DNA of 64,000 bases from contig MCFE01000010.1 of NCBI GenBank assembly GCA_002104905.1, forward strand, positions 186,001 through 250,000, written 5' to 3'. Positions 33,169 through 64,000 of this stretch are shown one piece after another. The first letter of the stretch is position 1; every line of letters starts with the position of its first letter. The stretch comes from Basidiobolus meristosporus CBS 931.73 (Eukaryota; Fungi; Basidiobolomycota). Under the pieces are notes generated by a model. The model did not search any database. It had not been told where the DNA came from and saw nothing but the letters and a program-made list of their open reading frames with translations. Both the position numbers and the translations under genes were made by a program.

Positions 33169-35118
<1,950 letters not shown>

Positions 35119-59495: not shown

Positions 59496-62400
59496 CTAAC
59501 CCCATACATCTTCATTATATTTTCCATCATGTTGTAGTTGCTGGAAGTATTTGTCGGCCTCTTCTCTCCCGAGTCCTCCGACTTGCTCGAAGATGGAAAC
59601 CATTGTGGCAGCTACATCCTTCGCCATACCAGAGGCCGAACCACATACGTAGATGGCTCCTTGCTTGTTGTGAACCACATCCCATACTAAGACGGAATGA
59701 GCTAGCAATTGATGCTGAACATATTTTTTGGCCTGACCAGTACGCGAGAATGCAACCACCAGCTTGTCAAGAGTCCCGTCGTTGACAAACTCCTCTAGCT
59801 CTTCCCGATAAATGAAATCCTGCTCTGGCGAGCGGCAACCAAAAAACATGTGTGTTTCGGAGATGCCTCCTTTGCCAACCGATTTGCAGCCGTACAGTTG
59901 ACGCTCCTGTAGAAAACCTCGGAAGGGCGAAACTCCTGTGCCAGCACAAACCATGATCACCGGAACCTTTGGATCTTTGGGGAGATGGAAGATTTCCTTC
60001 ACACCACGGACATTTGCTCGAACCTGCCTTCCTGTCATACACCTGGACAAAAAGCCAGAACAAAGCCCAATATACTTTCTGCCTTCGAACCCGATGTCTT
60101 CAGTTACTCCAACACATATGTGAGCGACATTCTTGTGGATCTGTGGACAACTTGCAATGGAGTATCTACGTTTAGTCATGGCTGGCATACCACACAAGAA
60201 ACTCCGGAAATCGAGTTTCTTGATCATTGGGAAGTTTCGAATCAGGTCCATCAAGCAACGGTTCTTCTTGATGAATTGTAAATAGGCTTCGTTACCCTTG
60301 TCACCCGATTGGCACATATTTTCAAAGTACTTCTTCTCTAATTCCGGATGAGTGTCAGCTATGGCGGATACACATATACCAATGAATTGACGAGAAGGAG
60401 CTGCCTGAAGATCAGCGTAGTACGTCAACGCGTCGCGAATAGTACACGGTCCCTTTATACTTGCGGCTAATGAACGTGAGCTGAGACTGGTGCTGGATGT
60501 AGAATCGATGATCACCTCGAACACCGCATCTAAAGCATACCCGAAAGTGGCTGCCACTGTTTCCACCACCTCTGAATCATTCTCCGGCATGATTTCTAGA
60601 TGATCTCCGGTGTTGTAGGTTTGCTTTTCTGGCAGTTCGATCTCTAAATGACGCGTACTACGCTCACTCTTGACTGACTGGAGTTCAAGATTCTTGCACA
60701 CAATTGATGGCTGTTCCAGACCTTGTTGGAGGGGGATGTCTGTCAGAGGTAAGTACTTGAGTGATACTCCTTCTGTCGGGTTAGATGCGGCCGTGTTTGC
60801 AATGGAGCTTAGATTGGCCCCATTCAACCCAAAGTCAGATAATATAGAAGCATAAAATCTAGCCAGCCACTCGGTGAAGTCAGCATCAATATCAGCATCT
60901 GCGTTACCAGCCCCTGCAGGGAATAGTTGCTCAGCCCCCAGATACTCGAATCTGTCATTCACCTTTTTGGGGAAAGCCTGGTATGTTCTCCATTGCACGT
61001 TGCCGCAGCCAAATACCGCATAACGTAGGCCTTTGAGTGGTGTCTCGTTGACGTTGGTAGGAGCACTGATAAATTTGTCGAAATGAACTGCGTTGTCTGG
61101 AGGCAGGCCGTTATAAGTACTAGTAATAACTAATACAATTGGCTTACTCTGGGAGTCCTCCTCTGCACCTCCTGTATACTTCCCACTGATCAGCAACTCC
61201 CAATCATCCAGTGGAGTCACTTCAACTTCTTTAAACCCAAGGTTTCTTGCGTTGCTGGCCACCTTATTGGCGTATTCCTCAGACATCCCCATGTTGGATC
61301 CAAAAAGAACTGTGAACTTTGGCAGTTTCACATCACTCGGAAGGCTAGGCAAGGTCAACGCGCTAGTAAGTTCTGTAAATGGGGTGGTAGACTCGGATTG
61401 AATCTGGGTAGTGGCTTTGGGGAAGGAGGCGCGGGGTTGAATTCTGAAATAAAGATCTTTCGGCTTGATTATGTTGCCAGAGCTAATGTCATAGTGTATA
61501 GGGCGGTCATCTGGAAGAATGAACTCGAACTTTTTCAACAGCATAGCCTATGATATCAGGGTTAGTTTGGGCGCCAGTATTATGAATTACTTTCGCTCAA
61601 ACTTCACTCACCAGAATAATCTTTGCTTCCTGAAGCGCAAATTGCATTCCAATGCATGCCCGGGGACCGGTAGAGAATGGTAACCAAGAATACCGGGATC
61701 GCTTTGATTCCTCAACCGAAGTGAAGCGGTCAGGGTTGAAAACCTCTGGATCTTTCCTAGTAGATATGAGAAGGAAGAGGTTATTGAAAATGCTATATAT
61801 TCATCCATGGGCAGATACACCTACCAGATATTTGGGTTATGATGCAAGGAATATATGTTGATTTGTGCGACTGTTCCCTTCTCGATGGCGTATCCGAATG
61901 GAAGTTTACAATCTTTGATGCAGAACTTCTGCAAACTAGCCAAGGGTGGGTACATTCTTAGGGTCTCTTTCAAGACCTGGGGGACATGTTACTGACATAT
62001 ATGCAAGAAATGGCTTATGATTTGAGCAAATACCTGAGATAGGTACTTCATGCCGGATACTTGTGCAATGGTGGGTAGTTCGTCATCCGCGATCCCAATA
62101 TTGGCAAGCTCTTGCAAGACCTTTTTTAGGGCAGCTGGATGTCTGGCCAAATTATACAAACACCAAGCGAGCGTATTCGACGTGGTTTCATGGCCAGCAA
62201 TCAAGAAAGTGACTACTTGATCTCGAATCACTTCATCAGGCAGCTTCTGCCCGGTAGCTTTATCTCGAGCATTCAACATAAATCCAAGAAGATCCTTCGA
62301 ACTGTTTTGTGCATCAGGGGAGTTCTTCCTTTGGATAATCACCTATTCTCGAGGGTGAGTGATTGAGGCTTAAGGCTGAAATACTTGAACTTACATCATC

Positions 62401-63647
62401 CACGGTATCCTTCATCAGCTGCATCATGCGATCAAACTGGTAGTTGGACCAAATCGGTAGCTTCTTCCAGTATTGCGATCTGGTTGCCCGCGTTCTAACC
62501 TCCCTGAAGTATGTCAATACATTAGATTGGTGATACAGACAAAATGGCCACGGTTAATAACCTTAAGCAGAAGGACATGGCATCAATCTAAAAGAAATCA
62601 ATTTCGAGTTAGCATAGAGGAATCTATTGGTACTGTGCAGAAATGGCCTTACGAATGGATGGATTGGTGCATCCTTGGACTCCAGAAGGCCGAAATCAAA
62701 CCCGAAGCCAACCTTACCGATGGTTTCGAATGCTAGTACCAATCGCGTTAATCGTAGTTCATTTGGTGCAAATCTTATGGTCACCTACTAATTTTGGTCA
62801 TCCACGGAGCGATTAGAACCGGCTCTGGCTCGGTACTTATCTCACTAACAACATTCACCAGTTTTTTGGCAAGCAAGGCCATCTCGTGAGCGTAGGCCTG
62901 GAACAACGATGATTATTATGATGGCCCAGATTTTTGTTGTGAATACCCAAGTACCTTCATGGCAGCTGCCGAAAAGGCCGGCATCAGTAGCTTGTGGGCC
63001 AGCTTCCAAATCTCCTCATCGGAGCTTGTTGTGAATAGGCCATCCCCTCCAATTGCTTTAACCTCCGCAAAAGGTAACGTGATCCGCTTGGTAAAGTATT
63101 CAGTTTCCTGGGCGAAAAGCTCGGCTATATCTGGATGATTGGTTGTCAAAGTCCTTGTTTGGAAATTGAAGGTCTGAAGTAGCGGGGTGTCGTATTCTTG
63201 AAAGAATTTAAACAGTGATCCAACAATATCCGGGAGTAGGTGAGGGATAGTGCCAAATAAGGGAACTGTAGGAGGGGTAGGAATCTCCCGACTCGAAGCA
63301 CCACCGATAGTCAGGTAGACAACATCCATGCTTGCAAGCTGCTTGTAAGAGCTGAGCTCCCGCCCATATTTGTCCCGAAATTCGATATCCTGGTGTCTGG
63401 GAACACTCATCCGCTCCCCACACTCTTTTCTCACATCTTCAAGGCTCCCATCTGACTGGATCTTCACAATGATTCCATTCGAGGCCTCATCCTCACCGGC
63501 AAACGCAATGACAAGAATCTTGGGGTCTATACCTGGACTGGTATCTTGTTCTGTGTTGGGGAGATTAACCTGAAAGGCTTCCTTTGAATAAAGCTCAGTC
63601 ATGAGTAAGCGTAGTAGATGATATTTAATGCTTTCACTGACATTCAT
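59496..63647 (-). CDS. Self-sufficient cytochrome P450-NADPH reductase fusion (CYP505/CYP102 BM3 type) with ~120-aa N-terminal extension; 9 predicted exons
   Basis: [32 protein letters not shown], heme motif [13 protein letters not shown]; FMN domain LFGSNMG/TSTYNG/FGCGN; FAD/NADPH domain [18 protein letters not shown]; C-terminal DVWG. Confidence 0.93.
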
Positions 63648-64000
63648 GACATTGCTTAAATATGTTTACAGCCTACACTATAATGAACAGATATTAGAAA
63701 CACCACATCAGTATCCTATCAGCAATTTTAGTAAATACGAATGCACACGCGACATGATAGTCCAAATGGGCTAATCACAGTCCACTCCCACCTATAATTA
63801 TTACCCCGGGAACTCCGGTGTGATTAGCTCTGTGCAGGAAAGCCATCAGCAACATCAGTTTTGCCAAATAGGTGGAATACGGCCGGAATGTCTGCCGTAG
63901 ATACCGACGAGCTTTGGCCCCTAACCAGCTGAATGCCTAATTAAGTAACAAACGACGTCATAGCTGAGTGATGTATTAGACGAGTTAGATGAATTGAATG

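Follow-up and report, generated by a model that had tools for sequence, protein, structure and literature searches.

An additional beta-grasp domain at the N-terminus of a P450-reductase fusion enzyme in Basidiobolus meristosporus

The locus considered here raises the question of what a self-sufficient P450 carries, and why, in the residues placed ahead of the heme domain at which comparable enzymes begin. It lies in a 64,000-nucleotide (nt) stretch of the genome of the fungus Basidiobolus meristosporus CBS 931.73 (contig MCFE01000010.1, positions 186,001 to 250,000), hereafter called the window, whose numbering is used for all coordinates unless another contig is named. The gene occupies 59496..63602 on the minus strand, with nine exons, eight introns of 52–68 nt and the stop codon at 59496-59498. 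Base for base, it is the gene of the public 1209-residue protein P0010, annotated 'cytochrome P450'; P0010, an exact match to the window gene, was used together with exon references for the protein-level searches. The product is one polypeptide of four modules: a beta-grasp (ubiquitin-fold) domain of about 74 residues, a BM3-like P450 heme domain, a flavin mononucleotide (FMN) domain, and a domain for flavin adenine dinucleotide (FAD) and reduced nicotinamide adenine dinucleotide phosphate (NADPH). That the beta-grasp is real, integral to the enzyme and not cleaved from it is concluded with high confidence.

The catalytic part of the chain is readily recognized. Pfam assigns residues 108–554 of P0010 to the p450 family (E 7.9e-94), followed on the same chain by the FMN (flavodoxin) domain (Flavodoxin_1, residues 606–753, 60867..61310), the FAD-binding domain (FAD_binding_1, residues 809–1025, 60051..60701) and the NAD(P)H-binding domain (NAD_binding_1, residues 1058–1172, 59610..59954), all encoded on the minus strand. 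These three domains and the end of the heme domain are contained in a single 2052-nt exon. Simultaneously, the cysteine-ligand loop of the heme domain aligns with the BM3-type loop, and its cysteine is invariant in 96 homologues. A heme domain with this loop and a reductase part located C-terminally to it are the features of a self-sufficient fusion of P450 and cytochrome P450 reductase of the CYP102/CYP505 type, and a preliminary description of this DNA, which had proposed an enzyme of four modules, is borne out by Pfam for the P450 and reductase domains on one chain. The departure lies at the N-terminus, where the chain does not start at the heme domain, as in the three-module layout; instead, a folded domain is present within about 104 extra residues. 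No Pfam domain was found in residues 1–107 of P0010, and the N-terminus encoded in the window remained without a Pfam match even at E 10.

Comparison with solved structures places the boundary of this extra piece precisely. Two numberings apply, namely that of P0010 and that of the open reading frame (ORF) 62916-63647 (minus strand), which opens the nine-exon gene and starts 15 codons earlier, so that the Pfam p450 match begins at ORF residue 123. For every solved BM3-type chain, among them the full-length 9wuc and 8dmg, the alignment opens at P0010 residue 105/106 (ORF residue 120/121), which pairs with residues 2–6 of the chain; CYP102A1 (P450 BM3) likewise begins at the heme domain. Among the 50 best Protein Data Bank (PDB) chains found by structure, coverage started at model residues 98–107 and never included residues 28–101. 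The N-terminal piece is therefore a real addition to the BM3-type chain.

Within this addition, a leader, a beta-grasp domain and a short linker can be distinguished. The leader (P0010 residues 1–27, 63522..63602, minus strand; the first 42 residues in ORF numbering) is poorly conserved and modelled with low confidence. The beta-grasp domain (ORF residues 43–116, P0010 residues 28–101) is encoded at 63300..63521 on the minus strand and ends in a non-conserved Gly-Gly, after which, as placed by the alignment and the model, the five-residue linker ASSRE (63285..63299, minus strand) connects its last strand to the conserved I-P-x-P motif at the start of the heme domain. An AlphaFold2 model of ORF residues 1–132, built with 99 homologous N-termini, predicts strands at residues 43–49, 59–63, 88–91 and 109–114 and helices at residues 69–80 and 101–106. 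Residues 43–114 are modelled as strand–strand–helix–strand–short strand–short helix–strand with a predicted local distance difference test (pLDDT) of 72–84, and residues 17–39 fall below 50. This arrangement corresponds to the mixed sheet grasping one helix (strand–strand–helix–strand–strand–strand) of beta-grasp domains, and the strand and helix segments marked by eye in the preliminary description agree with it.

The structural matches point in the same direction. All top 50 PDB matches in Foldseek are SUMO, ubiquitin or other ubiquitin-like (UBL) domains (E about 1e-3, target-normalized template modelling (TM) scores of 0.6–0.7, root-mean-square deviation (rmsd) of about 3 Å over about 80 columns), and the best matches in Foldseek and VIA-align are without exception beta-grasp domains; DCX, the Ras-binding domains of ELMO and Ral-GEF, the Rad23 UBL and PB1 are among the fold matches. 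The beta-grasp reading of the preliminary description is supported by these results. In contrast to the fold, the family could be assigned less closely than the preliminary description, which had likened the domain to ubiquitin, KHA and DCX, might suggest. The ESM feature search ranked a KHA cluster first (0.89), followed by DCX and UBL clusters, and Pfam returned sub-threshold matches to KHA in 5/100 homologues (best E 0.0012) and to DCX2_DCDC1 in 3/100. A PDB profile search of the N-terminal domain gave sub-threshold rows only (E 0.08 or worse), including polyubiquitin and the KHA region of GORK at E 0.1–1.7, the latter at E 1.7. Since no homologue scored above the gathering score and the window protein had no match at E 10, membership in KHA (PF11834) or DCX (PF03607, PF24478) was rejected, and the likeness holds at the level of the beta-grasp fold. 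A 2Fe-2S ferredoxin-type beta-grasp was also rejected, because the four cluster cysteines are absent; the single cysteine (ORF residue 76) lies in a column occupied mostly by alanine in the homologues. Compared with UBL, DCX, KHA, CIDE-N and PB1 domains, the present domain differs in being the N-terminal part of an enzyme, not conjugated and lacking a conserved C-terminal Gly-Gly.

The distribution of the domain extends far beyond this gene, although single-sequence searches with the N-terminus reveal little of it. In a HMMER search of the 125-residue N-terminus against 1.84 billion representatives, one true relative was recovered, the paralogue P0002 of 1212 residues with the same four modules; five other matches were rejected as false, belonging to repeat proteins (beta-propeller, PAN, AIG1 and a low-complexity repeat). 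A word search with residues 1–110 of P0002 returned only P0002 itself. Among the 120 best matches to P0002, however, about 100 are P450-reductase fusions with an N-terminal extension, 1165–1465 residues long and mostly about 1185–1320. They derive from Basidiobolus, Mucoromycota (Mucorales, Umbelopsis, Endogone, Jimgerdemannia and Calcarisporiella), Kickxellomycotina (Dimargaris and Dispira), Chytridiomycota and Blastocladiomycota. When exon 1 was compared by BLASTP with about 90 homologues, the alignments started at ORF residues 44–45 and subject residues 5–10, so the domain forms the very N-terminus of those homologues.

A non-circular test was provided by a hidden Markov model (HMM) built from 65 Mucoromycota N-domains only. 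This HMM matches residues 30–98 of P0010 with 28 bits over nearly its full length. Furthermore, it matches every fused Basidiobolus paralogue (16–44 bits), Dispira (23–30), Dimargaris (9–17), the chytrids Chytriomyces, Siphonaria, Obelidium and Physocladia (16–37), Sorochytrium (19) and Paraphysoderma (13). No match to this HMM was found in Allomyces, Blastocladiella, Nowakowskiella and Rhizophydiales-type chytrids, despite N-terminal extensions of similar length, nor in metagenome proteins of about 1005–1016 residues (jgi, Logan), which begin at the heme domain. Across the family, the core pattern is kept, with hydrophobic strands, Gly58, Gly95 and helix positions 69, 72, 76 and 80, and the surface positions vary; mean column identity is 21% in the N-terminal part and 59% in the heme domain.

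Selection acts on the domain as well. The ratio of nonsynonymous to synonymous substitution rates (dN/dS) in the beta-grasp is 0.23 against the closest paralogue P0012 and 0.07 against the B. ranarum protein P0009, compared with 0.02 and 0.03 in the adjacent heme-domain codons and 0.47 and 0.53 in the leader. These values indicate that the beta-grasp is coding and under purifying selection, constrained less tightly than the catalytic part. Together with the 28-bit match of the Mucoromycota-only HMM, they place the domain, on sequence evidence, well beyond chance. The search for the same architecture in other genomes, which the preliminary description had called for, showed it to be the rule among roughly 100 annotated proteins from early-diverging fungi, and the four-module layout is the usual form of the P450-reductase fusions of about 1200 residues in these fungi (CYP5205 type) rather than a peculiarity of one gene.

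Several relatives in Basidiobolus and in metagenomes deserve separate mention. The gene of P0002 (L001:5001-8639, contig MCFE01000668.1) is intronless (3639 nt, 1212 codons plus stop), compared with eight introns in the window gene, and may be a retro-copy or a case of intron loss; its N-domain is 29% identical to that of the window. The B. meristosporus protein P0133 (566 residues, partial) is a P450 of the same clan that starts at the heme I-P-G-P motif without a beta-grasp, so both layouts coexist in Basidiobolus. P0127 (539 residues, N-domain plus heme domain; L005:6001-8924, contig MCFE01000133.1) was considered as a stand-alone form and rejected: a flavodoxin/FAD_binding_1 model of 258 residues lies 213 nt downstream, at the contig end, and the gene looks like a split or truncated fusion gene. 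Metagenome or genome proteins of 1004–1016 residues without the N-domain comprise P0089, P0097, P0098, P0101 and P0103 (jgi) and P0094 and P0104 (Logan), P0101 being located on a contig of 5.9 Mb. They are 42–45% identical to P0002, as close as the Mucorales fusions, and the relationship of bacterial-type and early-fungal fusions may merit a proper tree. In the window itself, a distant P450-like stretch at 33271-33693 (minus strand), with 25% identity to residues 423–534 of P0010 in tblastn, points to another P450 gene.

Whether the domain is translated depends on the start of the transcript and on the start codon; among public sequencing runs, no RNA run was listed for this organism. Exon 1 (63602-62955) encodes the beta-grasp and the beginning of the P450 with no intron between them, as the preliminary description had noted. 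Its figure of about 120 residues ahead of the BM3-equivalent N-terminus needs qualification: 119 residues precede the heme domain from the in-frame upstream ATG at 63647, but about 104 from the annotated start, the second ATG (M16 of the ORF, 63602), which is conserved in the closest paralogue and in the B. ranarum orthologue. The intervening 15 codons (63603..63647, minus strand) have no in-frame counterpart in either gene; in the paralogue, the upstream ATG is out of frame and followed by a stop after four codons, and in the B. ranarum orthologue, stops lie in frame upstream of the conserved ATG. A TATA-like motif, AACATATTTAAGCA (63653..63666, minus strand), is a promoter candidate. It is also present upstream of the paralogue (about 47–49 nt before its start codon), at an equal distance from the conserved ATG, and the segments between motif and ATG in the two B. 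meristosporus paralogues differ by an indel whose length is not divisible by three. As the motif lies only about 6 nt upstream of ATG 63647, transcription likely starts downstream of that ATG, and 63603..63647 is probably 5' untranslated region. Both candidate starts include the beta-grasp domain. A translation start still further downstream, by which the domain would be an annotation artefact and never be made, is scarcely credible: M80 and M107, the sole ATGs in the interval from the conserved start to the heme domain, fall inside the beta-grasp, the core pattern of the fold is conserved across phyla under purifying selection, and a full-length complementary DNA (cDNA) is reported for a relative of 1211 residues, CYP5205A9 (PMC9088945).

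The terminal Gly-Gly raised a further possibility, namely a ubiquitin-like pro-domain released by a UBL protease, as the preliminary description had suggested. The window gene and its nearest paralogue do carry Gly-Gly at the end of the last strand. Yet it appears at the aligned position in only 3/100 rows, the window gene, its own product and P0012, representing two genes; elsewhere, these positions are mostly Lys and Glu/Asp, with SG or NG in B. ranarum orthologues and K-E/D in most Mucorales. Moreover, the Gly-Gly directly ends the last predicted strand rather than standing on a free tail, is internal with about 1100 residues after it, and is separated by five residues from the I-P-x-P motif, in a linker that is predicted to be ordered when modelled with the heme domain. 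The class of ubiquitin-like modifiers (ubiquitin, SUMO, NEDD8), with an exposed C-terminal Gly-Gly, was thus rejected. Because the Gly-Gly is rare, closes a strand and lies so near the heme domain, cleavage is not a family property and is very improbable here. The domain is built into the enzyme and is not a modifier.

Known relatives give the enzyme a place in the literature. Fungal CYP505A1 (P450foxy) and the Dikarya CYP505 enzymes have about 1066 residues and are not known to carry the N-terminal domain; the 120 best matches to P0002 included no Dikarya member. As P450-reductase fusions, CYP505A1 and its Dikarya relatives resemble the present enzyme and belong to the same CYP505 clan, in which CYP5205 is also placed (PMC4122930). 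Published counterparts are CYP5205A9, A10 and A11 of Thamnidium elegans, self-sufficient P450s with a stated length of 'more than 1200 amino acids' (1200–1217), of which CYP5205A10 and A11 convert ibuprofen in yeast (PMC9088945). Mucorales proteins of this length in the analysed set carry the same N-terminal domain, and the passages searched on the Thamnidium enzymes mention their length only. The heme-domain identity of about 47–56% to Mucorales proteins is compatible with the >40% rule for CYP5205, with no compared sequence bearing the CYP5205 label. Full-text searches of the library used here returned no paper on a ubiquitin-like or beta-grasp domain at the N-terminus of these fusions. The earlier view of an undescribed architecture is thus correct in part: the extra domain appears to be undescribed, but the enzymes have been published as CYP5205A9–11 and the layout is typical of an annotated family.

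A possible role is suggested by the position of the domain relative to the heme. In a model of P0010 residues 1–570 with 95 homologues, the beta-grasp reaches a pLDDT of 82–91 and the linker block 79, with a predicted TM (pTM) score of 0.86; in the model of the N-terminal part by itself, the linker stays below 50. The linker of 5–6 residues and the gain in pLDDT within this context suggest that the beta-grasp is fixed on the heme domain, and docking rather than flexible tethering is considered fairly probable on the basis of the model. The domain would then add a surface for protein contacts beside the heme domain. This surface could help to position the mobile, electron-donating FMN domain of the same chain or, in a dimer, of the other subunit. 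CYP540A2 of Aspergillus nidulans, a soluble P450 of the CYP505 clan, provides a parallel. It possesses a folded N-terminal domain of 79 residues, unexplained by database searches, for which AlphaFold3 predicts binding of Lys30 and Arg36 to the cytochrome b5 domain of the redox partner; the difference is that CYP540A2 has no reductase fusion and its partner is a fusion of cytochrome b5 and b5 reductase (PMC12462446). In addition, a shape search of the ESM Atlas matched a 550-residue Ascomycota P450 cluster to model residues 42–130, which comprise the beta-grasp together with the initial segment of the heme domain (TM 0.55, rmsd 2.5 Å), and the two N-terminal domains may be related. If they are the same domain, a contact surface for the electron-donor domain becomes the likeliest role. 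By analogy with the predicted contact of the CYP540A2 domain with cytochrome b5, contact with a redox partner or within the dimer is put forward tentatively as the most likely role, at odds somewhat short of even.

Several observations weigh against this role. BM3 and CYP505 work without such a domain, which must be dispensable for the basic chemistry. The docking is a prediction from pLDDT and pTM, and the much faster evolution of the N-domain compared with the heme domain also fits a loosely constrained accessory. A profile search for proteins of 198–630 residues gave 45 matches and no Ascomycota CYP540 among them, so that the link to CYP540A2 is drawn solely from structure and the literature.

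Other roles for an integral domain, including the oligomerisation and localisation conjectured in the preliminary description, have to be set beside contact with a redox partner. Self-association in the manner of KHA and PB1, with contacts between beta-grasp domains that strengthen or change the oligomer, would suit enzymes of the BM3 type, which act as dimers; the sub-threshold signals toward KHA in Pfam, where it is described as a channel 'dimerisation domain', the leading KHA cluster in the feature search, the GORK row and the presence of PB1 among the fold matches are consistent with this, and it is nevertheless rated unlikely. An adaptor function, by which the domain would bind a membrane protein, the cytoskeleton, a small GTPase or the proteasome/UBL-binding machinery and thereby set localisation or turnover, is given no better prospects. 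Many beta-grasp domains are used in this way, including the DCX, ELMO, Ral-GEF and Rad23 domains among the matches. A title cited in PMC12462446 (Kitazume et al., 2000) also reports P450foxy as membrane-bound without a transmembrane anchor; this conflicts with the statement in the preliminary description that CYP505 is soluble. Conversely, the conserved positions are mostly core hydrophobics and glycines, and the domain has no recognizable binding motif and no known partner. Such a pattern, with a fast-evolving surface over a conserved core, could also be that of a passive structural cap or a folding and solubility aid without a specific partner, replacing the N-terminal membrane anchor of microsomal P450s, and the catalytic cycle does proceed in BM3 without the domain. 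Against a passive cap stand the retention across several fungal phyla and the dN/dS of 0.07–0.23, and this explanation is regarded as quite improbable.

For the window alone, the significance is modest, the gene being already annotated and its architecture typical of its family. In a wider context, biocatalysis relies heavily on BM3-type self-sufficient P450s, which also serve as the main model for inter-domain electron transfer in P450 systems. An entire branch of these enzymes, found in most early-diverging fungi, possesses a conserved fourth module of the ubiquitin fold. If this module positions the FMN domain or stabilizes the dimer, it would provide a new handle on coupling efficiency and on the engineering of these enzymes. 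Should the module and the N-domain of CYP540A2 prove to be the same, this would explain an open remark of the 2025 paper and date the module to early fungal evolution. Further, and on the doubtful side, the entire fungal CYP505 clan may have had the beta-grasp ancestrally, as a site for docking or gating of the electron-donor domain (FMN or cytochrome b5); it would then have been kept in the fusions of early-diverging fungi and, as the 79-residue N-domain, in reductase-less Dikarya CYP540, and lost in Dikarya CYP505. Were this true, the fungal enzymes would possess a regulatory element without a counterpart in BM3.
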